Source: Podarcis melisellensis
Lineage: Eukaryota
DNA length: 64,000 bases
Assembly: GCA_964234715.1 (NCBI GenBank)
Contig: OZ174282.1
Strand: one strand, 5' to 3'
Shown one piece after another: positions 1 to 42,140 of this stretch. Position numbers and translations under genes: made by a program. Every line of letters begins with the position of its first letter. Positions within the stretch are counted from its first letter, which is position 1. The notes beneath the pieces were generated by a model that ran no database searches, was not told the origin of the DNA, and was given only the letters and a program-made list of their open reading frames with translations.

Positions 1-551
1 ATTTCTGTAATCATCCAATTTGTATAAAGATGCATTCTTTGTGCAACTACACAGTGCCTTTGGGGACTCCACATGATAGGAGCATCAAGGAGGGCAGTTC
101 TAGGGGCTGATAATTGTTTGGGGAGGGCAGATCTGCTCCTTGCCTGGCTAGAAGCCCCTTTAGCCTTGAATCTACTTTCTGAGTGCCTCTCTATTGAGTC
201 ACAAGGTGTTAACCCTACCCCTTTAAAAAGTAAATCTAGGGATAAAGAAATCCCCATTCCTTCCAGATACAGGTATGGTGCTATAAAATCAGATTGTACT
301 GCTCTAGTTTCTTAGTCTGTGTTTGAGCTAGCTGCCATCCAGAGGGCTGATGATTTCTTCTTTCAGGCAGAGGAGACAGGGCTGGAAGGAAGGACTGAGG
401 CTGATAAAAGGAGGGGGATAGAAGGAGAGCTCCAGGTGGCATTTGTGTGCCTCTTCCAAACAACAGCACAAGTGCACAGCCAGACCAGCGTGGCTGAGCA
501 GAGCCACAGAGGGAGACACAACTGCACTGCAATCTGGTCTTTGTTTTCCAG

Positions 552-2074
<1,523 letters not shown>

Positions 2075-11500: not shown

Positions 11501-14500
11501 AAAGTGTGAGGGTGGCAAACAGGCCGTGCCTCTGTATTGCTTGCCAGGATGTGTTGCTTGAGTGAAAGACTATGTGCCATTGAACTGCTCTGTCAGGGGC
11601 AGGTCTGGATGCAAAAGGTGGGTGTTGACATCTCAAGATGATCCTTGGATGGAGATAGTAGCAGCGGCAGCAACTCCATCATCTGTCCCACCTCTCTCTC
11701 TCTTTCTCATAGCTGCTTGAGTGTTATCGGGACCTGGTATGTGACAGCCATCATAATTATCAAATATATTTGGCCTGATGAGAACATCCCACAGGAAATT
11801 ACAACAAGGTACGTGGGAGTGATGCTCCTTCAGAAAGAGGTGGAGCCGTCTTGAGCTGCCACCCTTCCAGTCTTTGTTTTCTGCAGTAAGGCAGTGGAGA
11901 GACCTGACAATTTACCGTATTTTTCGCTCTATAAGACGCACCAGACCACAAGACTCACCTAGTTTTTGGAGGAGGAAAACAAGAAAAAAAATATTCTGAA
12001 TCTCAGAAGCCAAAACAGCATGAGGGATCGCTGTGCAGTGAAAGCAGCAATCCCTCTTGCTGTTCTGGCTTCTGTGATAGCTACGCAGCCTGCATTCGCT
12101 CCATAAGACGCACACACATTTCCCCTTACTTTTTAGGAGGGAAAAGGTGAGTCTTAATAGAGCAAAAAATACGGTAATTACTAGACTACCTAGTCGAGAG
12201 TCTCCAGTTAGCTTTTAACTTTCAATGTAAAAAAGTTTTTATTTCTGTGGTGGGCACTGTATCTGCCCACTCTTTAAGCTGCTGAGAGGTGCATCCCATT
12301 CCTCTGACTTTTGGCCATCCTTATGCTGGGGACCCATCCAGTTCTCCCCTGCTCAGGACTTGACGACTTGCAGCTAGCAGTCAGTGGGGACACCTGAAAG
12401 GCAGAGGGTAATTCTCACTGTAGGGGGAAGAAGGATGCATTAACCCATCCTTTCCCAACCCAATGCCTTCCAGATGTTTGGATTTCAGTGACTGGGCTGG
12501 CTAGGGCTGATGGAAGTTTTAGTCCAAAACATCTGGAGGGCATCAGATTGAGAAAGGCTGTGTTTGCGAGTGGAAGGGTTCCAGTTTAGGCATTGTCTGT
12601 GAAAATAGAGATGTGCATCTTAAGGTAGATTCATTTCATTGGCAGTGCCTCTCTTGCATTAATTTTAACTGTCCGAGTTAAAACTAGATCCTGCCAATCA
12701 GTTCTTGACACGTTACTCCCCTCAGGGGAGGGGATTTTTCCATTCTGAGTAAATGCTGATGGTAGACATTTGCTGAACCACACCATGAACTAACATGTGT
12801 GTTCCTCTCCGCAGCCGCTCCTCTTGGATGTCTGTCTTCAATGCCATGCCCACCATTTGCTTTGGCTTCCAGGTGAGGCTTGTCTGAAGGCCCCAGGTGG
12901 GTGTGGGCACATTGAGGCCAAAAAAGTCCACCTCTCTCGGTGTCTCTGTAACCAGGCCTTTGGCTGATTAAACATTCTATGGCCTTTTAAAGTGTATTTG
13001 GGGGAGGGAGCAGCTATTGGTATTTGTTTTACTATATATTATGTGTTCTCATTTTGTATTTTTATTTTGTGAGCTGCCCTGTGATCAGATGAAGCGCAGC
13101 ATACAAATTTAATTAGTAATAATCATTGTACCAAGTAAAAGCACAGTGAGCCACCCAACTCAATATTTTCTATGCTAGCTTGGTGCCCTCCAGACTGGCA
13201 GGGTCTCTCTGGGGTTTCATTCAGGGGTCTTTCTCAGCTCTATTTGGAGACACTGGGAGTGTAATGGGATGGGAAGAGAGACAGAATAATCAGTCTAAAC
13301 CCTGACCTTTGTTTCAAGTTTAATTCATTTTTATCTTGGATGAAATTGTAGTGTTTTCTTTCATACGGTGTTTATGGCATGTAGCCTTGTGTTTTTCTGT
13401 CCATTTTTTATAAGTAGGATGTGATATCCTAAGTACACTAGCCTCAAACTCTTGCAAGAAAGGTTGAATAAGGTGTGAACAGACAGACAAAAGCTTTTGA
13501 TGTGCTCATATGGAGCCTGCGCTCCCTACTCTTGACAGATGAGGGATAAGGGGAAATGGATTACTGTAGAATACAAATACAGCTGTCCTAGGAAAAGTTA
13601 AGATTGAATTTGGTTCAGAAAGCATTTAAAAAGGGATAATGTGAGTTACTCGGGTCCTGGAATGAGGCAGAGGTGGCTCTTATTCGTCAACCGTCTTAAG
13701 GGAAAATCAGAGACCCTGTTATAGCATCCTCCCTCCAGATGTTCATGGCACCAGGTTGGTGAAGGCTACTTTTTGCTGAATTTGTTGACTGGTTGTTTGG
13801 TCTCCAGCTGTGAAAACGTATCTGTGTAAAAACTGCACTAGCCCAAAGAACAAGTCAGGGAGAAGGCTCTCCTGTGCAAGTAATCACAAAGGCTGATGAC
13901 TTCTGCACGATCAGAAAACTTGCATTCTCCTCTTCCACACCTAACAACCCTTTCCTATTCCTCTTCTCCCTGGCAGTGCCACGTCAGTAGCGTGCCCGTC
14001 TTCCACAGCATGAAGCAACCAGAGGTGAAGCCATGGGGGGCCGTTGTGACAGCAGCCATGGTCATTGCTCTTTTTGTCTACACGGGCACAGGTAGGCGGG
14101 ATGAAATAGAGGAAGCGCTCAATCTCCTCTTCTGAGCTGCATAAGGGAGACTGATCTGTATTCCCTCATGGGATGGGAAGTGGCTGATGGTGGGCTCTGG
14201 GTCATTGTGAACCACCACCACCTTCTTTCTTCATCTTCTCCTCTTCTTCCTCCTCCTCCTGTTTCCTGCCAGGAGTCTGTGGATACTTGACGTTTGGGTC
14301 CAGTGTGGAGCAGGATGTGCTCATGTCCTACCCCTCCAACGACATCCCAGTCGCCATTGCCCGGGTTTCCATCATCGTCTGTGTTCTCACTTCCTACCCG
14401 ATCCTGCATTTCTGTGGCCGGTGAGCGTGGAACAGGAGGGGTTGGTGGGGCTGGCTGGTGCGAGCCTCTCCTGCTGCTGTGCAGTCTTTGCAGGGGGTGT

Positions 14501-15838
14501 TGCAGTGGCAGAGGGCAATCCCTAACTCCTCCTTTTGTCTTGGCTTCCTGCCCAGGGCTGTGCTGGAAGGCCTCTGGCTGCGCTACAAGGGGGAGGCGGT
14601 TGAAGAAGACGTCGTGCGGGAGAGGAGGCGGCGCCTCTTGCAGACGGTCAGCTGGTTCCTCCTCACGCTCCTCCTGGCTTTGTTCATTCCTGACATTGGC
14701 AAAGTCATCTCTCTCATTGGGGGCCTGGCTGCCTGCTTCATCTTTGTTTTCCCAGGTAGTTTCCCCTGGCTGTGTGTAACAGGGGGGTTCTTATTCTGCT
14801 TTTGCTGGGGGGATCTGAACCTGAGGCTGCAAGCAGGGACCCATGGAGGTGCCTCCCCCAGCTTGATTTACCTGAGGAGTAAAGGTGCTCCCACTCCAGG
14901 GTCCCTGCCCAATGGCAGGGGGAGCCTTTCAGGCAGAAGGCTACAGAGAGGCAGAGAAGCACTTGCCCTCACACTGGGGAGTCTCCCTTAGGAGGGGAAA
15001 AGAGGACAGAGGGACTCAGAAGACCTCAGTTCACTTCTGCTTTTAGCAGAGCAGATCATAGAATCATAGAGTTGGAAGAGACCACAAGGGTCATCGAGTC
15101 CAACCCCCTGCCAAGCAGAAAACACGATCCCTTGGAACTCTATTTGGTGGTCTTTACTACCAGCCTGGCTCACCTCGCCTTGCGGGTACCTGCTCTGGAC
15201 AGGCCAGAATATTCCCCTAGCCGGAATTCTCTTACTCTCGAAGTTCAGCATGAGTTGCCACCCTTCCCACACCCACTTCCTTTGGATAAATTAGCAATTT
15301 ATTGTTAGCCCACACAACCAACTTTCTTCTGCACGGTGACTTTTCTGCAACCACCTCAGCGGTGGATCTTCTTTCACTAAAGTGTTCAAGACATACTTCC
15401 TTTGCACACCAACAAGAACCTGATATTACTCAAAACAGTTGAACATAACACTGGCTTTGTTAGAACTATTCATCATTCTGAGATTCAGATGGCTTCCAAA
15501 AAAAAAAAGCCTTGGTGGTTCCTTCTGCTTTTTTCCTTCACTGTTTTCCTCTGCTCCTTCCTTGCCAGGACTCTGCCTCATCCACACCAAGCTCTCCGAA
15601 ATACAAGAGGCCAGACCAGCCGGGTAAGAGCTGTGCTTCTTCTTTGCTGCCTCCTCTTGCCCAGTTCATCCATGTGGGGTCAGTGGTTATGGAATCATGT
15701 GTGCTTCATGCCAGTCTCCCCTCTTTTATCCATAGCTGGTGGGCGATGGTGAGCTACGGCGTCTTCATGGTTATCCTTGGAGCATTTATCTTTGGACAGA
15801 CAACTACCAACGCTATCTTTATGGATCTCAAGAAGTGA
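8572..15838 (+). CDS. SLC38A7: Sodium-coupled neutral amino acid transporter 7 (SNAT7), complete, 10 coding exons, 1380 nt / 459 aa
   Basis: Exons 8572-8832, 9554-9752, 11272-11416, 11713-11808, 12815-12872, 13977-14091, 14273-14420, 14556-14755, 15569-15623, 15736-15838. All GT-AG with phases that join into one frame. Motifs [54 protein letters not shown] and GQTTTNAIF match SLC38A7. Confidence 0.97.
10923..11068. mobile_element. Non-autonomous hAT-type MITE (146 bp)
   Basis: TIRs CAGTGGCGTAG...CTACGCCACTG with a perfect 8-bp target-site duplication TCCTGGTG at 10915-10922 and 11069-11076. Confidence 0.9.
11915..12174. mobile_element. Tc1/mariner-superfamily (Tc2/pogo-like) MITE
   Basis: TIRs CCGTATTTTTCGCTCTATAAGAC... 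and ...GTCTTAATAGAGCAAAAAATACGG, flanked by TA on both sides. Confidence 0.85.
15056..15125 (-). mobile_element. CR1-type LINE/SINE 3' tail fragment
   Basis: TCATAGAATCATAGAGTTGGAAGAGACC...GTCCAACCCCCTGC is the reverse complement of the CR1 (ATTCTATG)n terminus. Confidence 0.65.
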
Positions 15839-18117
15839 TCCCTACAACTGCCCTCGGAGGGTGCCTTTCCTCCTCTGGATTCTTGAATTCCAATTTTTGG
15901 GGATGTCTCGTGTCAGCAGGAGGCAACCGTTCCCTCCACTCTCCCCCGGTGATTGTGCTACTCCTGTTTTGTTTTGTTGGGAGCCTCTTCCGAGACTTTG
16001 ATTTCCAACTTCTTTCCCACTTGATTCTTGATAGACCAGTCAAGTCCCCACAGGGCCACTTGCTGTGCATGCAGCTTCACACTCTGAACACAAACTGAAT
16101 TCCTCTTTGCCTTTTGGGACATCGCTCTCAAAAAGGACTTTCCTTTTGCCCTTGCCTTCCACACACTTATCTAAGAGGACCCAGACCATTCACTACACAA
16201 CTTCTGCTCTAAATTTATGTGCCCGGGGGGCTCATCTTTGTATCATGACCAGTGATGTAGCAAAGGTCATGTGGTTGATAATGACATGACCTGCACAGTG
16301 TTAACTACAGCTTAATTACTTTAAGGCAGCCTTCCCCAGCCTGGTGACTGGTTTGGATGACAACTCCCATCAGCCCCAGCTAGTACAGCTGTATGGTGTT
16401 GGGACTGATGGGAGTTTCCCTCTGAAACATTTGGTAGGCACCATGTTGGTAAAGGCTGGCCTGTGGACTTGGTGCTTATTGTGGAAGTTATTTGTTTTTA
16501 TATTGTTGCTATCCTTTTACTTTTTATATTAGAAAATGAAAACTGAGGGAAAAGATCCTTGAGTTTTAGATACACATACATTGGAAAAGGGAATATTTGA
16601 CTACATTTGAGGGCATTTCCTTGGCATCAAATTCATGTAGGTCCTTCCTTCCTGTCACCTGGCTACTTCCTTCCCCTCCTTTCTGGTGAGATTCGCCAGA
16701 TTCAGATGCCACATGAACAAACTCTATTCCTTTGCTGGGCGGTGTCTCTGCTCCATCCAATCATGTTTTAACCCACAGTATTCATTTGGTTTTCAGTTGT
16801 CAGAGACCTATTTCCTTTTATGTTTTCATTTGATTAAGTTGATGCCAGATTCTGGGGCTGTAGCACAGGTTTGCCATGTGTGGGGAACCTGTAGCCGCCC
16901 CCCAGATGCTCTCATCGGCCTGTGCAACCAGCCAGGCCCAAGTGTCAGAGATGATGATGGGAGCTCTGTTAGTACAGGAGCATCTCAGGGCCACACCTTC
17001 TGTTGCAGGATCCCATTCGTATCTGTTGGTTCCAATGTGGCATTTTGTAGCATGTTCTGATGTTTACAAAGCAGATTTTTAGAAGGTCTCTATGTCCTGG
17101 CAGATGGGACTAAAGTCCAGGCTCTCTCTCAATGTCAATTATACACTAATTTTGAAGATTTTTTGTGGGGGGGAGGTGCAACGCACACCCCCAGCCTCCA
17201 TTTCAAATCTTGTGTTCCAGGATGGGTGGTGGTGGTGAGGTTTGGGATTTAATGGGACAATGTCACCATGGAAATAAGAATTAAAAAGGAAAATTCCAAC
17301 TTCTGGGTTGCTTGTGCTTTGATTCCTGTCTATTAATGCAGATCCAGTTCTAGGTGGCTTCATAGCTTGGTTCTCCTGCAGAGAGGGACAGAGAAGCCCA
17401 AAACTCTCTTACCCGCCTTCACCTTCTTCCTTGCAGGAACCATCTCTTTGCCAAACTGCCAGCTATTGAGCAACCCCTCCCAGCTTCTCTTTCACTCATT
17501 GAGCGATGCAGCATAGTTGGAGCAAAATAGTTTTGTCCCTCTCCAAGATCTGGAAATGGAGTGAGAGAGAAGACAGCTTCTAGTGGCAGCACTAGGGAAA
17601 CTGGTGTGGGCCATCCATGCAGGGTAACATTGCCTTTCAGGTTCTGTTTATCTAATCTTTATGCAACAAATTGCATTGATTAATGTTTGCATAACATATT
17701 CCTATACGTAACCAGACCCTTTGCTGCAGGCCCTTTAATTTCATATCTGTTTTTATGTTCCGCCTTTCTGCGTAGAACTCTGTGGGTCATGATCTCAAGA
17801 ACCACTGTTTAGAAAGCCAGTACAAAGAAAAATAAAACCAGTCAAAGTCACCAGCAGAAATGCTACTAAAATGTGAGAGCTGAAACAGGACTCTCAGGCT
17901 CCGCAACCAGGTGCCCTCCAGATGTTTTGGATTGCAAATCCTCTGCCAGTATCAACTACAGTGGTGTAGATGTAAGCCGACTTGGGGATTTTTCTCTTCC
18001 AGCATCCTAGATTTTAAGTTGTTCCTGGTGAATGTCTAGGTTGGAGATACCATTGAGCTGCCACGGCCTAAATAAATTAACATTATTATGTATACGACTT
18101 TGGTTTAGTGCCATGTA

Positions 18118-18343
18118 CAGTGGTACCTCAGGTTACATACGCTTCAGGTTACAGACTCCGCTAACCCAGAAATAGTACCTTGGGTTAAGAACTTTACTTC
18201 AGGATAAGAACAGAAATCGTGCTTTGGCGGTGCAGCGGCAGCAGGAGGCCCCATTAGCTAAAGTGGTGCTTCAGGTTAAGAACAGTTTCAGGTTAAGAGC
18301 AGACCTCTGGAACGAATTAAGTACTTAACCTGAGGTACCACTA
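18118..18343. mobile_element. Tigger/pogo-like MITE (226 bp)
   Basis: TA-CAGTGGTACCTC...GAGGTACCACTA-TA, with internal CAGGTTA repeats. Confidence 0.85.
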
Positions 18344-20739
18344 TACATAGGTTGAGCCAACAGAGTCACCTTTGTTTGGAGGTGAGCATGGAATAGTTTT
18401 TGTGAATGGCTTTGAGTGGGGGGGGGGCAGCTTCCCCATCTCGTATTTTTATATATTTTTATATCCTCTTCCCACAAAGGACCCTGTCCTTTAAATTCAC
18501 CATGGTGAGATTTGTATAATTTGCATCAAGAAACCTGTCTCAAACCACAGCTGTATTCCTCACTTGTGTCTTCTTTGGTGCTACCCTTTTTGGTAGGATC
18601 TGCTTGGCCTCAAACTGCACTGGCAACAAACTTTTCCAAGGGCAGGAAATGTGCTGAGTCAATAGAAAATATTTTGCCTGGAAAATAGGAGGCAGCAACC
18701 TTGAAAACCCTACTTAGAGCTTGTGTGGGTCACTGCTATTTTTATCTTATTGTACTGTATTTTTTTATTTGTTCCACCTCACACTGAGGGGGGAAATTCC
18801 AAAGGTGAAAAGTGGGCCTGATTAAGAGCAGGTGTTGCTGAGTCTCACTTCCACTTGAAGAAGGGTTCCTCAGTTTCATCCAGGTGAACTTTCTTGAAGG
18901 GTCTGAGAGGTACACAAAGACCCTCAAAGGATCAGATAACTTGATAGATGGCATTCACTTTCCCAAATTGATGGATTTGGAGAGAAATGAATATGACTGA
19001 GTAGAAAACCAGATGTCACCCCAAAGCACCTACCTTGTGTTCAATATGGGCCACCTCATCTGTGTGCCTTCCAGCATCTGCCAGGTTTGAATGGGTAAAT
19101 TTGTGAATCCACCATTGACACCTCAGGGAAGTGGGTTCTCAGAGGAGTGAATTACAGATGGTTCCTTCCAAGTGGGGTGTTTGTGCCATAGCCCATCATT
19201 TGTCTGGCTTGGGCAGACTGGTGGCATCAGGCAAGCCAGCCTGGCACTCCTGACTGAATTTAAGCTCTCAACCTGGGCAACATCTTACTGAGAGGGGGAA
19301 CCAGACTGCTGGTCTTCAGCCCATCTCAAGCTTGCACACCATGATTCCAGGCATCCAAAACTTCTAGTCCACCCTCAAATATAAATATTTCCGGCACAGC
19401 TGGATGAAACAAACTGGAGAAGGCAGCCACAGTCTGCAGCATCCACCACATCAAAGAGGGCATTTCAGGCCAGGAGGGAAAGTTTCCATGACTTTGAGAA
19501 GACGTGTTTTGCACTTTAGAAACTCTGGACCCAGCCTGTGAGCTGGCCCACACATACACACTTAGGAGATGGTTAGCATGTGGGATTGAGCCAATGCATA
19601 TCTACCAGGGAGATCAGCCTGGGCCACCACAAAGACCGCACTGTTCAACGGGATCTCTTCATACAGTCAGAAGCCGGTCTCAGTTGATGTGCTCCACATA
19701 ACTGAAAGGGTACCTTATATTTTGGAAAAGCTTGACTCCTGATGGAGAAGTGAAATTCAGCTGGGTTATGAATAAAACCACCTAATTTTTCAAACTTGTT
19801 ACTTAAGTCTGCTAGAGATCCGATATACCAACTTCCACCAGATGAGATCACCCAAGTGTCTTGTACCCTTACTTTTCCAGGTGATGCATCAGGTTTTAGC
19901 TAAGATAGTTGTGAAGTTGGAATAGAAGAGCACTGACATAATGGAGGCGCTGGACCCAGCTTTTAAAGTGGCTAATTACCATTTCTGAATTAAGTGCTGG
20001 TTTTTAAGGCTACTGGAACCAGAGGTAATTCACTGTTCTATAATTCAGTCTATCTCTATTGATCCAGTAAAGATTCAAGTCTTTCTGTAAGTGAATCAGC
20101 AGTGGTTGTTGATACACTTCATCAAATAAAAGTTTCAGATTGGGGGACTCATACATCACTGTGCTGTTTTTTTGTCACTGAGCAACAGCTTACAGTACTG
20201 TATTATTTCTACATCTAAGCTTTTCTTACCTGTCCAAATGAAATAGTTTGTTATCCTTAGTTGGTTATCCATTTTCCCCCCCAAATGTCTGGGAGACCTA
20301 GGTTTGAAAAAGAGCTAATCCAAGGATTAAAAAAATAAATAAAACCTACATACAGCAAGAGTGTTTTGTGTTGTGTAGGCTCCTATGATGTAATAGGCCC
20401 CGCCTGCTAGACTGCTCTCTAAAATATCACATATAAAGGGCCCCATTATCTTCAGTAGCTTAGGGCCTCATCAAACCTAAGTCCGGGCCTATGCCTAGAT
20501 ATTTCTGCTTCTCAGATTTTGAGAGATTCCATTAAGGAAGTGTCACTTAACCGTATCAGTACCAATTCTTGGAAAAGATTGATCATAATTTACCGTGAAG
20601 CCAGAGACTTAGCCAAATTGGTCAATCTAATCTGAAGTCTTGTTAGGCTAAATTAGGTGAAGGTGACATTTCAAAGTGACATTTCCTTCCAAAGAAGCCT
20701 GGCTTGTGTTTTGCTGGTACATTGAGCCACGCTGCCCGC

Positions 20740-20870
20740 CTTCCTATTATCTCTAGTAATCAAGAAACAATATTATGCTGTTGGCTTGTTATCAGAGTAC
20801 ACAGGCCGAGCATGATATAAGGTGCCCTGCAACTCCACCACTCTATGGCAGCCTGTCCCAAAACAGCACC
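20740..20870 (+). promoter_or_regulatory. Putative TATA-type, non-CpG-island promoter of the CTSA-like gene
   Basis: TATAAG at 20816-20821, 55 nt upstream of GCACCATG. GATA-type hexamers TTATCT (20747) and TTATCA (20789). No CpG island. Confidence 0.45.
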
Positions 20871-21558
20871 ATGCACCTCTTGTTCAGGTTGTGCGCCGTC
20901 TTCAGTGTCTCCTTTGGCCTCTGCTCAGGGACAGATGCTTCTCCGGATCTCATCACTTCCCTGCCAGGACTGTCTGAGATGCCAACCTTCCAGCAATGGT
21001 CCGGCTATCTCCAGGCAGGATCTGGCCAATACTTCCATTACTGGTAAGCAGAGAGCCAGGGAGCCAGAGATTGAATAATATTCATGTCTCCTCTTCATTG
21101 AACTGTTTGTTGCTTTTGGGTATGTGCTGGCTGACCTATGCATGCTTCCAATTGCTCATGAATTAAGAGCTAAATAGCTAATCCTGGCTAGACACATTGC
21201 TGACATCCAGGCAACAGCTGCTTCATGGACTTCCACCATTGGCAGCAGCAGCAACACTTCTGAATGCCAGTTGGTGGAAATTGCAGGATGGCAGAGCACT
21301 CTTGTGTTTGGGTCTTGCCTGCAGGTTTCCCTTGGGTTGGCCCCTATGAAAGCAGGGTGCTGGACTAGATGGGCCCCCTTGGGTGTGATCCAGCAGGCTC
21401 TTCCGATGTCCTTATGCTCTTGCTAACCGTTTGTTGAAATTGCCTTTGCCAAGATGTTCTGGATGAGTTGCAGCTTACAGAAACGTTTATGCTTCTCTAC
21501 TGCCCTGGAACTAGCTGTGTGGGGCAGCCTAAGAATAAGTTGGTTGCTTGTAACATTA

Positions 21559-21594
<36 letters not shown>

Positions 21595-24500
21595 ATAATA
21601 ATTTGTGTCTTCCCTTTACAGGCACAAATTCCCCCCAAGGCAGCTTACAAATAAAGTCAAAGTGCAATAACAATAAGACCATTATGAAAACAGAAGCTGT
21701 TTCATTTCTGGTGGTGATCCATGGCCCTGCAGAGGGGCGGGGGTGGGGGCAGGAGGGAGGCAGGCCCAGTAGGAGCAGGCTGCCATGTTGGATGTTGTAG
21801 TTCCTTGCCTGCCTCTCTCCTGGATTCCTGCCCATAAGGTAGCTGCATGGAGGAAAACGTTGATTCAGTGGGGGCTGCTTCACTAGCGTAAATGCGGCAC
21901 AGCCCCACCAACCTTAGCTATGTCACAACTGCCTGCCTTATGATTTACAACGGGCCCAGGGAGTGGCCCTGCTTGCCACCTTCCTCTTCCTCAGTCTCAG
22001 GGTTGATCTTGTAGAAGTCACTTGGGACAAAATTTTCTGGCTCTCCCTGTTGCTGGCTGTGGCTCCACCTCTCTCTGCCTACTATTAGTCTCTCTCCCTT
22101 CTGCCCCACTAGTCCCACCAGCTAACACCACATTTATTTACACCCCCAATGATGATGCCCCTGTTCTTCCTTCCATGTTCCCAATGCAGCCCCTCACTCA
22201 GCACAGGCATGCTTAGCTATAGAACTGCTGCAATATCGGGCAAAGGCAGTTTTAGGGTGGCACAACCAGAGCAGTCACACTGGGTGCCACACTGCAGGGT
22301 TCACCAAAACAATGCTGTAGAACAAAGCATAAGAGGCGAGGTTGCACCAAATATTAGTGTCACACAGGGCGTCGCTGAAATTTGAGAGCCCAAAGTCTGC
22401 TACTGCATCAGGTATCTTCCTCGGGTCTCCATTCTTTGGGCCTCCTCTAAACATATCCATCAGGGCGTTTGGTCTCTCCCTTTCTATCCTGACAGGTTTG
22501 TGGAGTCTCAGGGCAACCCAGCGACTGACCCCGTGGTGCTCTGGCTAAATGGGGGACCAGGCTGTAGTTCCATGGAAGGCCTCCTGGCTGAGAATGGACC
22601 TTTCCATGTGAGTCTGTGGCCGCTCTGTATGCTGATGGGAAAGGAGAGAAACATGGGACAAGAAAGGGGTTGTGGATCAGGCAGTTGGGGTTCAACTGGG
22701 CCTGAAGCTCTTGATCTCATCTCAAAGTTGTGGAGGCTGCCTGGGATCATTCTGTCAGGAGGGAAAGGTGCTATATACAGGTGCAGAGGCAACATTATTT
22801 ACTTACTATGAGATCACCAGAGCCAGGTGCAAAGGGGCTCTATGTTGTTTTAATTTTGCCCAAAGTTGTTGAGCTTTTGGGGATTTTCTTGGACATTTTC
22901 CTGATTTCCACCTGGACACTGCTGCCGACTGCAGTATTCTGTATGTGTCCGGGAGAATCTTGGATGTATGGCAATCCTGCAATAATGCCCAGACCAACTC
23001 ACAGGTGCCTGATTTCTCAAGGACTGGGAATCTGATACTGTGCTTGGAGGCAATTTATATGGAAGATTTAATGAACAGCATGCTGCAAATACCTCACATC
23101 CCCAAAGTAACCCGCTTTGCCTGCCTTGTGGTTTTGTGTAGCTGAATGACGATGCAACACTCTACCTGAACCCCAACAGCTGGAACAAGGTAGCCAACGT
23201 GCTTTACATGGAATCTCCGGCAGGAGTTGGCTATTCCTATGCCACAGAGGACAGCCCTATCAATGACAGCCAGGTAGGTCATTTGCTGTTCGTTCCTGGC
23301 CTACGGACCGCATTCTCTAGTAAACAAAATGGGGGCGATTCATATCACATGCCAGTGGTGGGTGGGGCAATTGATGGAATGGTGATGGTAGCAGCTGATG
23401 GGGGAAGGTTGTTAGTCCTGTGGCAGTAATATAGGGCAGAACCACACCATACATCATCATCATAATTAATTTGTACTCCACCCAACTGACTGGGTTGCCC
23501 CAGTCACTCTGGGCAGCTTCCAACAGAGTATAAAAGAACACATGATACATCAGACATTAAAAGCTTCCCAATACAGGGCTGGCTTCAGATGTCTACAGAA
23601 AGTCATATAGTTGTTTATATCTTTGACATCGGATGGGAGAGTGTTCCACTGGGTGGGAGCCACTACCAAAAAGGCCCTCTGCCTATCTCCCTGTAACTTC
23701 ACTTTTTCAAAATGAGGGGAGAGTGTTCCAATGGGTGGGAGCCACTACCAAAAAGGCCCTCTGCCTATCTCCCTGTAACTTCACTTTTTCAAAATGAGCT
23801 GGACCTCAGTCACGGTTTTAAAACACAGCCAGTGCACATTTAAATTATACGACTTCCCCTAAAGAATCCTGGGAATCGTAGATTGCTAAGGGCACTGGGA
23901 ACTGCAGCTCTTTGAGGAAGAAACTACAATTATCAGCATTCTTTGGGGGAGCCATGTGTTGTAAATGTGCATTGGCTGTGCCTTAAATGTGTGGCATGGT
24001 TCTATCCAGAGGCAATATAGACTTCCTACACAGCTGCCTGGGCTGTGAGGGATCAGCTCACAAAGTTTGTAAGTATTGTTGGGACAGATTCCATTTGCCT
24101 TACAGGTAGGAGAAGTCTTTATTTGGATGTTCATTGAGACAAATCAAGACTTCTGTCATATACTCCTGACGGATGAGGAGCAGAGGGGTGGGGTGGGGGA
24201 AGATAATGCCAGGAGTGTGTTTCTTAATGCAGCCGCACATGATATGCACATCAAACTCTGTCCTATGATTTGCACCAAAGCTAAGAGGTGGGTCAAAATT
24301 TCTCCCTACTTTAGGTAGCTGAGGACAACTACCAGGCTCTCCAGAGTTTCTTTGCTAAATTCCCAGACTTTGCAAACAACGAATTTTATGTTTTTGGGGA
24401 AAGTTATGGTGGAATCTATGTCCCCACTCTTACTGCCAAGATTGCGGAAGGATCAGCAGGCATTAACCTGAAGGTAAACACAATCGCGGTACAGGAAGCA

Positions 24501-27500
24501 GGGTCACTGGAAAACCAGGAGACCTAAGATCTTCCATGTAGGCCAAATGGCACATTTAGGGGCAATGAGTGAGCACTGCCAACCCACAAGCAGCAGCCAC
24601 TAATGCAGATTTTGCCCTGATGACAACAAGCCCTGAAGGCCTCACTTCTCTCACATCCAAAGCAGGCCACATGGAAAGGACATGCCTGGAATTTGGGAGG
24701 TGGATTCACTTTGAAGGCCTTGCTTGGTAGCTGCCTCTGAATGTCCGGTGCCATTGCCCCACATCCAGTTGTGCTGTATCTCAAGAGGCACTAGACACTA
24801 CAGTTCCTCTGCCTACTATCTTCAAACCTGGCATCAGGCCTGGTTCTAATTATAGCCTTTCAACTAACTATCCCATCATCTAGTTTCATACAACTCCTTT
24901 CTTGGCATGATCTTTTGTTATCTGATTCCTCAGGGATTTGGGGTTGGCAATGGCATGCTGAGCTATTTCCTCAATGACGAGACACTGATGGAATTTGCCT
25001 ACTACCATGGAGTGTTTGGAGATGAGTGAGTACAGAAGAGGACAAGGGGAGTTGGGTCAGCAAGTGGCCACAGGTACAAGTCAACAACTGGTAGCTCCAA
25101 GTTCACAACTGGCCTCTAAAAGAATTGTCCCTGCCTTCTCCATTTGCCAGATCAAATGAGAAGCAAAAAAGGAGAGTGGAGACTGTAGTAAAGGGTCTTG
25201 CCCTTGTCATGCATCACTGAGTACATCAGAAACAAGAAACTGGCAAGCAAGGTGGTTGGATGGCAAGTGAGTCAAAGGTGTGTTAAATAAGGGGAAGCCG
25301 TTGTTTCTTGTCAGTGAATAAAATTAGCAATTATCTCCACTGAAGAGAGGACAGAAAGAAAAGCTTAGCTTGCACAAACTGTAGGCAGAATAGTTAGGGA
25401 GGTTGTTGACATCTCCAGGGAACACAGGACAGATATCTGTCAATGTTGTTTGAACTATCTGTTCTCCTTTGTTGGGCAGGGGAGCCGGTGTGTGTGTGTG
25501 CTCACACACACTTTGTGCTTCTAAGTTGTGAACCACCCTGTGATTTTGAGTGAAGGGTGGTATACAAATGTAATGATTGAATAAAAATGAATAAGCTTCC
25601 TTCTACCTGACACTTTACCGCCTTCTTTCCTGCCTTATAGCTTGTGGGCCTCCTTGAACGAAAACTGCTGTGATGAAGGAACTTGCAACTTCTCCAGCAA
25701 CATGAACAGTGATTGTATCACGGCAGTGAGTGCCTGGACTGAAAATCCTTGATACTAACTCATGTAGTGTGCACTTTGCAAACTCAATTTGCACCTGGCC
25801 ACAAACTAGAATGTTCTAATTGTTATGCAATAATGTGTTTTGGCCTGAACTGGTAGATTATGGGTTTAGCAAAGTCTTCTGGAAATGTCTCTGCCCTATT
25901 TTGTGCCCATAGCACCTACTACACCAAATTCTCTGAACAGCATTAGGATGTTGCCAACATGTTACTACACCGTTGAAATAATTGCAATGGGTGCTAATTA
26001 CGTAGTTACTGGGCTAAGTTAAATGTGCTGGTTTTGGTGCATAAATCCCTATACACCTTGGAACTAGGATTCCTGATAATCCCACCCCTTATATATTCAG
26101 TTGATCACAGTGCTCTGTAGGTGAAGGCTGCCTGCAGATACCGTCTTATAATGAGGTCTATTCTGCACAATGTAGTAATCTGGTCCTTAGTGTTGGGGCA
26201 CCTACCCTTTGGAATCCCCTCCCCTTGAATATTACACAGGTGAAATCTCTTGTCTTTTAAGTGGTTATCTTTACCCCAGTCTGCATCTGTACTGGAATTG
26301 TTTTTAAGATTTTGGAATATGTTTTATTGCTATGTTGTTAGCTGCCCTGGGCTCCTTTGGGCAGAAGGGCAAGATATAAATTTGATAATTAACCCATAAA
26401 AATAAACTGATGACCCTCAAAGGCTATAAATATTACTGAATTCCACACATCTGTTTCCTTTCTCCTCTTTCTGCACATAAACTCAGAGCGTAGCTAACTC
26501 TTCTATCCTCTTCTTCCCTGTTCCCATCCTCAAGATATCACAAGCCTATGGAATTCTTTATGGAATTGGCCTCAACGTGTACAACCTCTACACATCTTGC
26601 TGGGGAGGAGCACACTACCAGGAGCGTTATGAAGCCGATCTGTCGAGCCTCTTCCACCACTACCAGTTTGATGTCCCAGTGCCAGTGAGTTGCTAGGCTA
26701 TCTTCATCACATTTACATCACTCAGGTGGCTCTAGCGATTCTGTGAATTTGGCAAACTTAAAAAAACCAAAAAAACACACATTTTCTTAAGCATTAATAT
26801 TCAGTATGGAAATTTATTCCTAAAAGTTAATGCTGGGAAGGCATGATTCATCCATTTATAAATGAACTATGGGCCACTTGCTGAATCAGGCTTAGGTCTG
26901 GCAAAGCAAGGTGCTGGTATCTTGCACCAGCTTTTCCCAGAAGAATTCAACCTCATCTTGCCTTCTCTTTGCTTTCACTTTCAGAAAATTGGCTCTATCC
27001 CAGGAGTGCCACATTGTATAAATGCCACTGCGATGTATGTGTGGCTGAACCAGGATGAAGTCCGGCAGGCTCTCCACATCCCCAGCACTCTCCCAGACTG
27101 GGAGCTCTGCAGGTGACTCCCATCAAATGTTTCTGCTCTTCAGAAGCTTGAAAAAGTTGTTTGGTAATGGAATGGTAATGAAGGGCAGTGGCCTGGCAAG
27201 GCTTTGTGGAAAAGTGGTGTTTCTCTGCTGGTACAGTACTGATGCACTGCAGGTTGCCAGAGCTTGATAACATATGGGTATGTACTAGGACTGAGATCAA
27301 ATGAAAATGCAGACTGCAACAAAAACAGCTTCCCCATCTTTGTTTTGACAACCCTCTAACGTGAAGCACCTGTTTCACTCTGCCCATACTTTCTTGCCCT
27401 AAGCCTGGAAGCTGGGGAAGTGATGTCAGAATTATCTGCAAGGGTAGTCTCCTTTCCCAGATAATGAAATCAAGTGAAGGGAACTGAAGATTTTATTGAT

Positions 27501-30500
27501 GTACTGACTACCTTGCTTCTTCAAGACCCCTCGGGTGAGCTGACAGATCTCCAATACCAATAGTCCTGGGAGACAACAATCATGTTACAGTCATCTTGTA
27601 AGATGTGGCAAAAGTCCTTTATGATATTGAAGAAATCTTTCCCCTGTTGGGGTTGCATGCATAGTGAGTCATCTGATAGAGCTTTTTCAGGTGACAAATG
27701 GACCTTTCTTCTCCTTGTTCATCTTACTGACATGCAGTCATCAGTAGTCTTCTGTGGTATTTTTGTTGGGCATTTGGAGGGGTGTACAAAACCTTATCAT
27801 TATTTATTTGGGTATTTCAGTCTCACTGAGAAGTGACATTACATGTTCAGGAAACTTGTTTGAAAAAATAACTTCTCCATAGGTAAGGTTTTCCACATGG
27901 CTAATCCTCACGTTTGTTCACACCTAGCATAGTTGTGCATTTTTCTGTATTCTAAGTACTGATGCTTACCACCATTTCCCATTAAAATGTCTTATTGTGG
28001 CTTAGGTGGTTTTCCTTAAAAGAGACAATGAATACAACAACTAACTGCTATTACTGGGCATTAAGAGGTTTTGGCTGGAACTAATAAGTTGGATCTCAAT
28101 TGTATGAGAATTCTGAAAACAGTTGTAAAACAAACTGCCTTCCAGACATCATTGGATTAAATTATAAAGGATATTTGTCTCAGTTGTGGACCGCTAAGGT
28201 TGGGAACATTTATTTCTCCCCAGCTTATTTATTCTTCTTCCTCTGGGGCAAGGTATAGAGTACATGGGTTTGTATATTCAGCATCATTTCCTCTTGAAAC
28301 CACTTGGTGGTGGATGGCCTTGGCTCATGCTCATATTCTGATAGGCCTGCAGGAGCAGGAAAGGAATTCTGTGGCAGTTGGCAGTCAATGAGAACCCCAA
28401 CTTGCATGCTCTTGGCAGCTTGGATTTGCATCTTGGTGACAAAATCAAAAGGGCACCCTTGGTTGATCTTACTGGTGAAACAAAGGGGAGAAGGGATGAG
28501 GGGCCCAAGCTCCTTGAACTCCACCCCCCATGCATTTCTCTTCTCCATGCAGTACACAGGTTAGCTCTCATTACCAAAGGGTGTACAGAGACATGACTCC
28601 CTTCTACAAGTATCTGCTGGCTCAGGACCTACGAGCATTGGTTTATAATGGAGACGTGGACATGGCCTGCAACTTCTTGGGGGCTGAAAAGTTTGTTGAG
28701 TCTTTAAATCAGACTGTAAGTAACTCCTTTGAACTTTGCATATCTTAAGTGCTGTATTGAAAACCTATTGCTCCTTAATTTATGTGGGAAGACACAGCTG
28801 ATCCTGCCTTTTAGACCCAGGTTTCCAACACCAACAGATGTGCAGTTGTTGTTGAAGACATAACCAAGTTGTCATTTAGAAAAAAAAAGTTAGAATGGAT
28901 GGGCAGAGATGAAGAGAAAGTTAGCAAAACATGATCTGGAGTAAGTCTACTAAGAGCCAGTTTTGGAGCATCCGTGATAGACTAGTATGTACACTAAAAT
29001 TGGGTCTGCTGTCCGTTTCCAGTTTGTGACCTTCTTTTTCATTAATTCCACAGGTGCTAAATGATTACCAGCCCTGGTATTTCAATGATCAGATTGCAGG
29101 ATTTTTCAAGGAGTATGAGAAGATCACATTTCTCACCGTAAAGGTCAGTGATTTAATTGGAGCCAGTGGGCATTATACTTTTCATTATTTAAAAGATTTA
29201 TGCTCTGCTTCTCCCCTGTACAACAGTGTTACTCAAAGCAGATTTCAAGTAAAAATCAGCAACATGCTAATAATTAAAAGACAAAATAACTAGTTTATAA
29301 ACAGCAGGATAACACAAAAACAGGAAGAGCAACACTAACAGCCAATACTTTAAAGCAGGAGCAGAGCCAAAAGCTTGTTTAGAAAGCTCAGTTATTTTAT
29401 GATTCTCAAGATAGAGGTTTGTGATGGGCCCAGTGACTGCTTTACAGATTTCATCCCAACACAGCCACAGAAAAAGGTCGACCCCTCTTCCAACAGTAAA
29501 TAAAGCCAATATATAAAACATTGGGTTATAAAAGATAGCTACTTCTACTCTTCCAGCTTTTCCTTCAGGTTCTAGGAGGAGGAAGCACCTTTTATTTCTT
29601 TGCCAAAATGGGTCCTAGCAGGCAAAAGTGCTGATCTGGGTAACAGTTTTACATTGGGAATCTTCTGCCCTTAAAAATGAGGCTTTTTGCTCCCAGGATA
29701 AACCTTTAAGGAAAAGCCTGGGGAAAACTGCTGCAATGACTACCAATCAGGGACAGAGCAAATAAAATGTTGCCCCAATACATGGTGTGGAGGGTTGGCA
29801 CTCATGGCTTGATTGAGTTTACACTACTTCTAGCCTGGGAAATGCTATTGCTTGCTAGATCACCTCCCCATCAAGCGACAACTATGATTTCAGTACACTG
29901 TTAAACAGGATGTGCCACCTGTTCCATGCGCCCTACAGAATCCAGTCCCTCACCTATGACATATGTGTTTGTGTGTGTGTGCAGTGTCCCATAAAAAATG
30001 CTGGACAGTTAAGAGCATAAGCAGCCAACAGAAAACACGTTGGGGGCAATGGCTTCTCTAGCTGGAGAGACCCATTATTAAAAGGGCTTAGGTGTAATCC
30101 TGGGCCCTGTAACAAAGGCCTGGTTCTCAAGTAACATTAAGCTATGGTTTGTTTAGCGTAACTGTGGTTTGTCTGAACATGTGAAAACATATCAGCAAAC
30201 TAGCCTGTTTATTTTCTATCAGCAAATGACAATGTGAAGCCATGGCTTGGTATTGGCTTAAAAATCATGGCTTATTCTAACTACGGTTTAACATTACTTA
30301 TGAACCTAACAACCCTGCTTAACTATGGTTGTTTTCCCTACCTGTTACCCCAGATGCTCCTCAAGCTTGAGAAGGCATGACACAAGAGTAGCTAGAAAAC
30401 AAAATAAGATCTAAGCAGGTGTGGGGAACCTTTGGCTTGCCAGCTGTTGCTGAACCATCAGTCCCAGCAAACATGGCTAATGATGATGGGAGTTGTAGTT

Positions 30501-30886
30501 CAGCAACAAATGGAGGGCCACAGTTTCCCACACCTGCTCTAAATAAAAATACATGGCTTGTTTGTTAAATAACATTAACCCCAGTTTATGTGAAAACACA
30601 GCCAATGTGATTAATTGCACGCACATTATCAAGACAGCACTGGTGAAAAGTTGCTTTCTCTCCTTCACACAGATGTTGCCTCTTCTTGCTCTGTTCAATA
30701 TAAGCTTCCAGTATCCTTCACAATGTTTTGGGCAGGGGGGAATTATTTCAGATGTACTTTATCAGCTCTTTTCTAAAGCATCTTCCCTCTCATATATAGG
30801 GTGCTGGTCACATGGTTCCACAGTATAAGCCTGGACAAGCTCAGAAGATGTTTGAATGCTTCCTCTCCAAAGCCAGCTACATCTGA
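20871..30886 (+). CDS. Cathepsin A-like / lysosomal protective protein-like serine carboxypeptidase (peptidase S10), 11 coding exons, 1371 nt / 456 aa; a paralog rather than canonical CTSA
   Basis: Exons 20871-21043, 22496-22607, 23142-23273, 24315-24473, 24934-25025, 25641-25725, 26535-26684, 26985-27112, 28553-28715, 29054-29143, 30800-30886 join in frame with no stops. Signal-peptide-like N-terminus, [10 protein letters not shown] and [10 protein letters not shown] are present. Catalytic Ser in GESYGG (24402), Asp in NGDVDMAC (28659), His in GAGHMVP (30809). Confidence 0.93.
21559..21594. repeat. (GATT)9 microsatellite
   Basis: Direct reading of the sequence. Confidence 0.95.
23450..23800 (-). 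mobile_element. L2-like LINE 3' fragment containing an internal 82-bp tandem duplication
   Basis: Tail CCACCCAACTGACTGGGTTGCCCCAGTCACTCTGGGCAGC is the reverse counterpart of the 40925-40980 tail. Duplicated units at 23635-23716 and 23717-23798. Confidence 0.6.
30416..30536. mobile_element. hAT-Charlie-like palindromic MITE (ACTACAACTCCCA family)
   Basis: CAGGTGTGGGGAAC...GTTTCCCACACCTG termini, TCTAA-type flanks, core GATGATGGGAGTTGTAGTTC. Confidence 0.7.
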
Positions 30887-31015: not shown

Positions 31016-31021
31016 ATTAAA
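31016..31021 (+). terminator. Candidate polyadenylation signal (ATTAAA) of the CTSA-like gene
   Basis: 130 nt after the stop codon and followed by GT-rich sequence. Confidence 0.4.
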
Positions 31022-31899: not shown

Positions 31900-33500
31900 T
31901 TGCAACATTCAGCTTCACTGGCGGGGGTCCAACGTTACGAGGGTGGGGGGACTTCTTTGCCCACTTTCTCCACCGCACCGCCGTGGTTTTAAGCACCTCT
32001 TTCACGTCCGCTCTCAGTTGTCCTTTTTATTTTCATGAAGGAAACAGACCCCAATGTCACGTGGTTTCCCCTACCCGGGATGCTGCTTCTCCAACACTTT
32101 GGTCCCCCTCAGACCCCCGTCTACTCCGGCCCCACGGAGAAGCCCCAGGGAAACGGCGTTCCGAGAGGAACCCCTCAAGCCAGGCGCGGGAGCGGCTCCG
32201 AAGGGAGGATGCGAAGACCCGCTTAGCAGCTGCACAACCGCCTCAGGCGCACCCCCGCTCTCCGGGAAGCCCGTGCGCATGCGCTTCCTTCCAGGGTGGA
32301 GTGCTCGTCGACCTCCTAGCTGCCCCGTTACACTTCCCAAGGAATCGCGCCTGACGCCTGGCTCCTCGGCCACAGCAACCGCGCCCGACTTTTATTGGTC
32401 GTAGCTGACACGCTCCCTTCGCGGCGCCACGTTATGATTGGCCGAGCTGAGCTCAATATTGCCTTTAACCAATCCTTGTCGGTCGATAGTTCTGCAGCGC
32501 CCCCTAGCCATCTCCTCCGCTTTGCGCCGCCTTCCAGCAACCACTTCCGAACACGGATTGGGTAACCTGGCCTTCGTCCCTACGCAGACGCAAAGGGGGA
32601 AAAATAATATCGCGCTGCGCCTCGAGGTGGGGATTGGACGAAAGCAGGGAGGCGGGCTCGAGCGCGGAGCTGGACACAGCCTGCGATTGGGCCAGAGCTT
32701 CCTCGCGCGGGCGACCTAAGCGAGATCGAGGAGCCCCCGCCCCTGGCCTTACGTCCGTCGCAGGGGAAGACGGGAAGAGAAGGGCCGCGACGTGAGCGCG
32801 CGACTCCCGGCGCCATTTTGTTTGGGAACCAGCGGAGGAGGTAGCTAGAGAAGCGCGAGCGGCTCAGCCAGGCGCCCGCCCCGGCCCCGAGACCCTCGCC
32901 CCCGGCCCGCCCCAGGTGAGAACCGCGCCATTCGCTCCAGGCGGCAAGGCCGGCGCTGGCGGAAGCCACCGGGAGGCCGAGCGGTAGTGGCGGTAGCGGT
33001 GGGCGGCCTGCGTCCCGCGTCTCTCCCCGCGTAGCCGGCGCTGAAGCGCCAAGCAAAAGAGTGGTGAGCTGGGCCTGCCCGTAGCTCGCCTGTCCCTGCA
33101 CGTGTTGTCCCCTGTGGTGGGGCGAGGAGGCCTCCCTGAGACCCCCTGCCCCTCTCTCCCTCCTTCCCCTCTTGCGCCCCGAAGGCGAGTCCGGCCGCGG
33201 AATAAATAAAAGCCGAGGGTCGCTCGCGGCAACGGCGGGCTTCTGCCTGTCCCAATTAGGCCGCCGAGAAATTGTGAGGGGCCCCGTCCGCTCCGTTGGC
33301 CTGTCCTGCCCGCCCTCCGAAGCCGGAAGTGACTTGGGCCACTACTTGTGGGAGCGAACGAGGCGGGTCGGGAAGCGTTGTTGCTTGTTCAGAGGCTTTA
33401 GTTAATCCATGTCGAGGCGCCCGCCAGGCCCAGGTGTGCGCCGCCCTCGGGCTTCCTCAGCCGCTCCCGAATCGTCTTGTAGGATACCCGTCAGAGGCTG
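31900..33500 (+). promoter_or_regulatory. CNOT1 CpG-island promoter with non-coding exon 1 (donor CAG|GTGAG after 32915)
   Basis: Dense CpG. NRF1 site TGCGCATGCGC (32274-32284), six CCAAT/ATTGG boxes (32394, 32437, 32469, 32557, 32633, 32686), YY1 site CGCCATTTTG (32811-32820) and ETS site CCGGAAGT (33323). Confidence 0.85.
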
Positions 33501-38950: not shown

Positions 38951-39154
38951 NNNNNNNNNNNNNNNNNNNNNNNNNNNNNNNNNNNNNNNNNNNNNNNNNN
39001 NNNNNNNNNNNNNNNNNNNNNNNNNNNNNNNNNNNNNNNNNNNNNNNNNNNNNNNNNNNNNNNNNNNNNNNNNNNNNNNNNNNNNNNNNNNNNNNNNNNN
39101 NNNNNNNNNNNNNNNNNNNNNNNNNNNNNNNNNNNNNNNNNNNNNNNNNNNNNN
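38951..39154. other. Assembly gap (204 N)
   Basis: Run of N flanked by A-rich sequence. Confidence 0.99.
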
Positions 39155-41778: not shown

Positions 41779-42140
41779 GGGACGCGGGTGGCGCTGTGGG
41801 TTAAACCACAGAGCCTAGGACTTTCCGATCAAAAGGTTGGCGGTTCGAATCCCCGCAACGGGGTTAGCTCCCGTTGTTCGGTCCCTGCTCCTGCCAACCT
41901 AGCAGTTCGAAAGCACGTCAAAGTGCAAGTAGATAAATAGGTACCACTCTGGCTGGAAGGTAAACGGCATTTCCATGTGCTGCTCTGGTTCGCCAGAAGC
42001 GGCTTAGTCATGCGGGCCACATGGCCCAGAAGCTGTACGCCAGCTCCCTCGGCCAATAAAGCGAGATGAGCATCCAACTCGGCCAATAAAGCGAGATGAG
42101 TCACGACTGGACCTAATGGTCAGGGGTCCCTTTACCTTTA
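41779..42140 (+). mobile_element. Near full-length Sauria SINE (tRNA-derived)
   Basis: Head GGGACGCGGGTGGCGCTGTGGGTTAAACC with B-box GGTTCGAATCC, body CCTGCCAACCTAGCAGTTCGAAAGCAC...AAGTAGATAAATAGGTACC, and tail CCTTTACCTTTA. Confidence 0.9.

Follow-up and report, generated by a model that had tools for sequence, protein, structure and literature searches.

Cathepsin A (CTSA) is a well-studied enzyme of the lysosome; its deficiency leads to galactosialidosis, and its gene is usually treated as single copy. CPVL and SCPEP1, the other two S10 genes of the human genome, belong to the same Pfam family. We analyzed a 64,000-nucleotide stretch of the lizard Podarcis melisellensis (contig OZ174282.1 of assembly GCA_964234715.1; the window), in which a first-pass annotation had noticed an S10 peptidase gene between SLC38A7 and CNOT1 and had read it as an old paralog of CTSA, kept in reptiles and lost in mammals. 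Taken as a whole, the evidence is very probably best explained by an intact and constrained cathepsin A-like S10 carboxypeptidase gene of a lineage distinct from canonical CTSA; that the gene is a paralog and is intact seems close to certain. We call this window-type lineage clade A, a second SLC38A7-linked lineage clade B, and canonical CTSA clade C. The gene is a new, uncharacterized member of a well-known enzyme family and not a new kind of system. Full-text literature searches found no paper describing a CTSA paralog, and a 2026 survey that includes gar lists ctsa as a single copy (PMC13664112).

Gene model, family membership, and constraint

The S10 gene runs from 20871 to 30886 on the + strand in 11 exons (Table 1), a model derived by three-frame reading and a protein-guided splice search, and all 10 of its introns are GT–AG. 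Joined, the exons form a 1371-nt coding sequence free of internal stops, with 456 codons and a terminal TGA, and the uninterrupted 456-residue S10 peptidase with a signal-like N terminus seen in the first pass proved correct to the base. At the exon 3/4 junction there is one alternative, with both sides shifted by 4 nt in the 3′ direction, which leaves the protein unchanged. Exon 1 aligns to residues 1–58 of the 456-residue Podarcis and Lacerta proteins, and a start at ATG 20871 puts a hydrophobic, signal-like stretch ending in CSG at the very N terminus. The 488-residue NCBI models of P. muralis and Zootoca begin instead at an upstream in-frame ATG at 20775, while those of P. raffonei, P. lilfordi, and Lacerta begin at ATG 20871. 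As the Kozak context of the upstream ATG is weak and its use would bury the signal peptide, this start is probably an annotation artifact and 20775–20870 probably 5′ untranslated region (UTR).

Database, fold, and structure searches were run with single exons or stored database proteins as queries, and the joined model served only for counting, alignment, substitution rates, and trees; human cathepsin A enters the comparison solely through the scores and titles of PDB matches. Matches to PF00450 (Peptidase_S10) were found for 7 of the 10 exon pieces tested (E values from 8e-19 to 3e-3), six of them reaching the curated cut-off and exon 10 falling just under it (17.5 vs. 21.9 bits), and they are colinear across the exons, from profile positions 30–68 through 366–396 of 420. 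The full catalytic triad that had been claimed lies in the motifs GESY at 167 (Ser169), NGDVD at 376 (Asp380), and GAGHM at 429 (His432), and the four claimed N-glycosylation sequons, NDS, NFS, NAT, and NQT, are likewise present (positions in Table 1). Across an alignment of 45 sequences, Ser169 and Asp380 are invariant and His432 is found in at least 90%; eight disulfide-type cysteines (Cys 81, 232, 233, 238, 248, 273, 312, and 343) are kept and are invariant or nearly so. Of the features of canonical CTSA tested, the four disulfide pairs and both canonical N-glycan sequons (136 and 314) are present in the window protein. The AlphaFold2 model has a mean predicted local distance difference test score (pLDDT) of 80 and a predicted template modeling score of 0.84. 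Its best PDB match by Foldseek is the human cathepsin A precursor 1IVY, with a template modeling (TM) score of 0.83 and 46–48% identity, and mouse PPCA comes next; carboxypeptidase Y (CPY) and Kex1 match with TM scores of 0.65–0.70, and the model has the α/β-hydrolase fold with a cap domain.

Close relatives of the protein are annotated in other reptiles. The Podarcis lilfordi protein CAI5781991.1, labeled "lysosomal protective protein-like," is identical at 454 of 456 positions (99.6%), which places the exon model far beyond chance; the loci of the two species share ∼95% of their nucleotides. Proteins of the same label from P. raffonei and P. muralis are identical at 452 of 456 positions (99.1%) and that of Lacerta agilis at 445 of 456. 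Identity is about 83% for skinks and Elgaria, 77–78% for Anolis and alligator, 76% for a snake (Ahaetulla), and 65–70% for the clade A proteins of marsupial, elephant, platypus, coelacanth, and gar; the clade B proteins of white shark and Larimichthys reach 56–58%. The "-like" label, which the first-pass annotation had anticipated, is carried by clade A proteins in recent annotations of Tiliqua, Elgaria, Candoia, Pituophis, and three Podarcis species, and the plain name "lysosomal protective protein" by those of Anolis carolinensis, A. sagrei, Alligator mississippiensis, platypus, and the newer Zootoca annotation. The clade A gene is already autoannotated in dozens of genomes. One assembly, that of Pituophis catenifer annectens, has two 454-residue clade A proteins on different contigs and in the same 90% cluster, and these may stem from a recent duplication or represent haplotype copies.

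The clade A gene is under purifying selection. We computed ratios of nonsynonymous to synonymous substitution rates (dN/dS) by the Nei–Gojobori method (NG86). Between the window and P. lilfordi, there are 14 synonymous and only 2 nonsynonymous differences (dN/dS 0.04). Two squamate pairs were usable, and their ratios, 0.127 with Lacerta agilis (dS 0.085) and 0.141 with Tiliqua (dS 0.72), are not near 1, the value that had been named as speaking against a functional gene. The elephant–Tupaia pair gives 0.21, and deeper pairs give about 0.07–0.13 with dS saturated. Protein-to-genome threading in nine species (lizards, alligator, Tasmanian devil, elephant, platypus, Tupaia, and gar) gave exon lengths of about 170/112/135/159/92/85/150/128/163/90/87, matching the 173/112/132/159/92/85/150/128/163/90/87 of the window: The 11-exon structure has been kept from gar to mammals.

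Phylogeny, gene order, and distribution

The window gene belongs to a separate, old lineage outside canonical CTSA. The careful maximum likelihood (ML) tree, built from 62 sequences, supports clade A, with the window protein inside it, at 100/100 (ultrafast bootstrap/Shimodaira–Hasegawa-like approximate likelihood ratio test), clade B, consisting of sharks and ray-finned fishes, at 99/94, and the grouping of A and B at 98/92. A Petromyzon protein joins A+B (97/97) and a Lethenteron protein joins clade C (100/100), and quick trees agree. When six reptile clade A sequences were forced into the canonical clade, the log-likelihood became 134 units worse, and the constraint was rejected by the approximately unbiased (AU) test (P value 5e-6); the proposal of an old CTSA paralog thus stands, and the gene does not group inside the canonical clade. 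With a lamprey member on each side, the split between A+B and C predates the lamprey–gnathostome divergence. Human 16q and 20q are a recognized paralogous pair (CETP/PLTP, MMP2/MMP9, SLC12A4/SLC12A5, E2F4/E2F1, and CDH8-11/CDH22), and from this pairing together with the lamprey proteins we infer that the lineages most likely arose in the genome duplications of early vertebrates.

The sequences behind the tree came from several searches. A representative-library search with exon 4 alone returned only 50%-cluster representatives and no close ortholog, and it pointed to a coelacanth "lysosomal protective protein-like" entry; a full-length member of the coelacanth cluster was the query of the first homolog search, and the proteins that it returned, compared with the window by tblastn, then revealed the orthologs. 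For the canonical set, we searched with the S10 half of an 854-residue fused model from Hemicordylus and restricted candidates to at least 470 residues. This returned the canonical CTSA of gar, coelacanth, caecilian, teleosts, and lampreys along with invertebrate deuterostome proteins, and a search with the caecilian sequence added those of amphibians, birds, mammals, lungfish, and sharks. Invertebrate deuterostome CTSA-like proteins served as outgroups, and CPVL and SCPEP1 were left out of the tree.

Gene order agrees with a separate history. In the window, Lacerta, Tiliqua, and gar, the clade A gene immediately follows SLC38A7, in the same orientation; the order is SLC38A7, S10, and CNOT1 in Lacerta, SLC38A7 and S10 in Tiliqua, and S10 and CNOT1 in P. 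lilfordi. The placement of clade A just downstream of SLC38A7 dates back at least to the ancestor of bony vertebrates. The spotted gar locus carries, in this order, SLC38A7, the clade A gene, and a clade B gene that lies on the opposite strand, tail to tail with the clade A gene; this second S10 gene, at 17131–23862 of the gar locus piece, shares 94% identity with the clade B protein of Atractosteus. The clade B gene of Larimichthys adjoins SLC38A7, an E2F gene, and a gene with a GAS domain (GAS8-like). Linkage to SLC38A7 is a property of two clades, A and B, and not of one. Canonical CTSA of gar has a Neuralized/SOCS-box gene on one side and an LBP_BPI_CETP gene on the other, NEURL2-like and PLTP-like neighbors that make up the NEURL2–CTSA–PLTP arrangement named for vertebrates in the first-pass annotation.

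The 10-kb flanks of the elephant, Tasmanian devil, platypus, Tupaia, alligator, and white shark loci contained no called neighbor genes, and tblastn found no SLC38A7 exons in the mammalian and alligator 10-kb flanks or in the shark locus. A conserved element of the window (Table 1) is found again in alligator (75% over 165 bp) and elephant (83% over 66 bp), in both species at the same position relative to the clade A gene, ∼7–8 kb downstream, and is probably promoter or first-exon sequence of CNOT1. Two 854-residue RefSeq models of Hemicordylus capensis, named "sodium-coupled neutral amino acid transporter 7" X1 and X2, fuse the full coding sequence of SLC38A7 to exons 2–11 of the S10 gene and correspond to 8542–15621 plus 22488–30883 of the window. 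These fusions suggest read-through transcription between the two genes.

Clade A is widely distributed. Its retention in reptiles was borne out by lacertids, skinks, Elgaria, Hemicordylus, Anolis, many snakes, and crocodilians. The loss in mammals was not: Intact clade A genes occur in monotremes (platypus and echidna), in many marsupials including opossums, in afrotherians (elephants, manatee, dugong, aardvark, tenrecs, golden mole, and elephant shrews), and in armadillo and Tupaia chinensis, and mammalian loss is limited at most to some placental lineages. Among fishes, the gene is found in coelacanth, bichir, gar, bowfin, and osteoglossomorph and otocephalan teleosts. No clade A protein of birds, turtles, amphibians, or most boreoeutherians was among the best 120 relatives, an absence that is suggestive of loss in these groups. 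Both A and C are held by echidna, Gracilinanus, coelacanth, gar, bowfin (Amia), Astyanax, Denticeps, and Paramormyrops. In the sequences sampled, each teleost lineage appears with A or B and never both, A being found in Astyanax, Alosa, Denticeps, and osteoglossomorphs and B in Megalops, Chanos, Larimichthys, and Oryzias.

Other explanations of the locus can be set against these data. The nearest solved structures are human and mouse cathepsin A, and some databases call clade A orthologs "lysosomal protective protein," as would suit a canonical CTSA ortholog that had been relocated to the interval between SLC38A7 and CNOT1. A relocated ortholog is scarcely credible, however, in view of its rejection by the ML tree and the AU test, the 46–48% identity to mammalian CTSA vs. 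65–70% to mammalian clade A, the SLC38A7 linkage common to gar and other lizards, and the existence of species with both genes. The open frame itself would also be seen in an unexpressed or decaying copy, a pseudogene too recent to have lost it. Such a copy is very improbable, as the gene has 11 open exons with canonical splice sites, the predominance of synonymous differences to P. lilfordi and the low dN/dS to Lacerta and Tiliqua given above, invariant catalytic and disulfide residues, and an exon structure kept for more than 400 My (million years); the fused Hemicordylus models, if model building is read in this way, would further imply transcripts crossing the locus.

A different question is whether canonical CTSA is lost or missing in this lizard, making the clade A gene its sole cathepsin A-type gene, with a protective role toward NEU1 and GLB1 added. 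No squamate, crocodilian, or turtle is among the best 120 relatives of the caecilian canonical CTSA, where birds, mammals, amphibians, and fishes are all present; the plain "lysosomal protective protein" naming would make sense if the annotations that use it offered no better CTSA candidate, and lacertids and Python carry a canonical glycosylation sequon (the N117 equivalent) that most of clade A is without. Those 120 relatives end at ∼722 bits, though, the level of bird and mammal scores, and a faster-evolving squamate CTSA would fall below it; the "-like" naming is what would be expected if a separate CTSA were annotated in those genomes, and echidna, Gracilinanus, coelacanth, gar, and Amia demonstrably hold both genes. 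On balance, we consider a sole copy rather unlikely. A broader scenario, in which vertebrates ancestrally had three genes and clade A became the main or only cathepsin A of squamates and crocodilians, with its own mode of activation, possible coregulation with SLC38A7, and the protective role toward NEU1 and GLB1 taken over, appears doubtful at present.

Maturation loop and proposed function

The zymogen of human CTSA becomes active once an excision peptide is removed from one of its loops. The corresponding loop between Cys273 and Cys312 has 38 residues in the window protein and 38–39 in tetrapod clade A, and the canonical loop has 49–54 residues in eight clade C sequences, clade A being shorter by 11–14. 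Two blocks are missing from the clade A loop, and an IPGVP-type sequence takes the place of the conserved basic stretch that precedes the second cysteine in clade C. The shortening and the lack of the basic stretch suggest a different way of zymogen activation.

From these features, we propose the following outline. A predicted N-terminal signal peptide would take the protein into the secretory pathway, where it would be N-glycosylated and adopt the fold of the cathepsin A precursor, its cysteines pairing in the same four disulfides. Activation of the zymogen would probably be unlike the excision-peptide mechanism of canonical cathepsin A. The Ser169/Asp380/His432 triad may then trim C-terminal residues off peptides, most likely at acid pH and in the endo-lysosomal system or after secretion. 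The protein is likely to be a catalytically active carboxypeptidase, and an endo-lysosomal site of action is slightly favored.

Several points weigh against this outline. Sequon 136 occupies the canonical NDT site, equivalent to N117, which is invariant in clade C. The N117-equivalent sequon is absent from most clade A and clade B proteins and present in lacertids and Python, and the N117-type site of human CTSA carries the mannose-6-phosphate glycan; its being mostly absent weakens a simple analogy of lysosomal targeting for clade A. Sequon 314, in comparison, is universally conserved. The pLDDT of the AlphaFold2 model drops below 50 at residues 268–279 and 308–314, exactly around the maturation loop.

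The S10 gene is possibly coregulated with SLC38A7, an idea whose entire basis is the conserved adjacency and the read-through models of Hemicordylus. A scan for CLEAR/TFEB-type motifs between 15.6 and 22.5 kb found none and so gives no sequence support for TFEB coregulation of the two genes.

Window layout and comparison with known enzymes

On the + strand, the window contains the 3′ exons of GOT2, SLC38A7, the S10 gene, a CpG-rich block, and exons of CNOT1, in this order (Table 1), and the GOT2–SLC38A7–CNOT1 block was thus identified correctly, with exons of all three genes flanking the S10 gene. The exons of SLC38A7 are 67–94% identical, per exon, to the transporter half of the Hemicordylus model (tblastn), and the gene ends ∼5 kb before the S10 start codon. 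A search with an N-terminal motif of CNOT1 gave no match in the window.

Table 1. Features of the window around the S10 carboxypeptidase gene
Feature	Position	Strand	Remarks
GOT2 3′ exons	443-2074	+	Pfam Aminotran_1_2
SLC38A7 coding exons	8542-15621	+	frame open to 15838; Pfam Aa_trans
Upstream in-frame ATG and 32 codons	20775-20870	+	weak Kozak context
S10 exon 1	20871-21043	+	ATG in strong, near-perfect Kozak context CACCATGC; signal-like N terminus; mature protein begins
S10 exon 2	22496-22607	+	oxyanion-hole motif (GGPG at 77); PF00450 E 8e-19, profile 30-68; AG/GT splice sites
S10 exon 3	23142-23273	+	NDS sequon at residue 136
S10 exon 4	24315-24473	+	GESYGG with catalytic Ser169; PF00450 E 3e-15, profile 120-163
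S10 exon 5	24934-25025	+	
S10 exon 6	25641-25725	+	Cys cluster C232, C233, C238, C248; NFS sequon at 239
S10 exon 7	26535-26684	+	shortened maturation loop begins after Cys273
S10 exon 8	26985-27112	+	loop ends; Cys312; NAT sequon at 314
S10 exon 9	28553-28715	+	catalytic Asp380; NQT sequon at 396; PF00450 E 6e-10, profile 319-363
S10 exon 10	29054-29143	+	
S10 exon 11	30800-30886	+	GAGHMVP with catalytic His432; TGA stop at 30884-30886
Polyadenylation-like signal	31016-31021	+	ATTAAA, first such signal, 130 nt past the stop; from the motif only
CpG-rich block	~32.0-33.4 kb		GC content 0.59; upstream of CNOT1
Conserved element	32762-32920	+	inside the CpG-rich block upstream of CNOT1
CNOT1 exons	50203, 54813, 56213, 62928	+	CNOT1_HEAT and CNOT1_TTP_bind matches at 54813, 56213, and 62928

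Some smaller features of the region were noted in passing. Intron 3 of the S10 gene has, at 23550–23800 on the − strand, two adjacent copies of a repeat that bears an open reading frame (ORF) and resembles an interspersed repeat. Another repeat family lies in the introns of CNOT1, with copies of opposite orientation at 41829–42104 (−) and 53702–53941 (+) that have a translated motif of the form AGVQL.GHVA.MTK.LLA.QSS in common. The 5′ part of the CNOT1 region is broken by an assembly gap of 204 N at 38951–39154. In the P. lilfordi locus piece, a 74-residue gene call without a Pfam match lies at 22821–29071 (∼33.7–39.9 kb of the window), between the S10 gene and the coding start of CNOT1, and is probably a 5′ UTR or upstream-ORF artifact.

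Clade A represents a conserved sister lineage of CTSA more than 450 My old, which escaped notice because it appears to be missing from human and mouse. Lineage-specific processing of lysosomal or secreted peptides is a natural role to consider for it, and it may act as a confounder where "CTSA" is assigned by best match in nonmodel genomes. In practice, the gain is modest and consists of better annotation and of an enzyme with an altered activation loop that can be put to the test. The importance would rise if clade A were the sole cathepsin A of squamates or had a distinct mode of activation, and would otherwise stay modest; if it were the main cathepsin A and coregulated with SLC38A7, a lysosomal amino acid exporter, the two could form a module that trims peptides and exports amino acids.

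With canonical CTSA/PPCA (1IVY, 4CI9, and 7KDV), the window protein shares the S10 fold and just under half of its residues at the TM score and identities given above, the Ser–Asp–His triad, the oxyanion-hole and GESYxG motifs, the eight disulfide cysteines, sequon 314, and a predicted signal peptide. The window protein differs from canonical CTSA in that clade A has been separate since before the lamprey split, in that its gene lies beside SLC38A7 and CNOT1 and not between NEURL2 and PLTP, and in the shorter loop, which lacks the "VRLDPPC"-type end, and the N117-type sequon is not clade-wide. Clade B, known from sharks and ray-finned fishes (Carcharodon, Atractosteus, and Larimichthys) under the names "cathepsin A-like" or "lysosomal protective protein," is the sister clade, with about 55–58% identity, the same SLC38A7 neighborhood, and a loop that is also under canonical length (38–49 residues); unlike clade A, it is found in no tetrapod or coelacanth among the matches listed, and its glycosylation pattern is different. 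Yeast CPY, Kex1, and wheat serine carboxypeptidase II share with the window protein the S10 family, the triad, and the fold, but their identity to it is only 21–36%, and their processing and cap regions differ.

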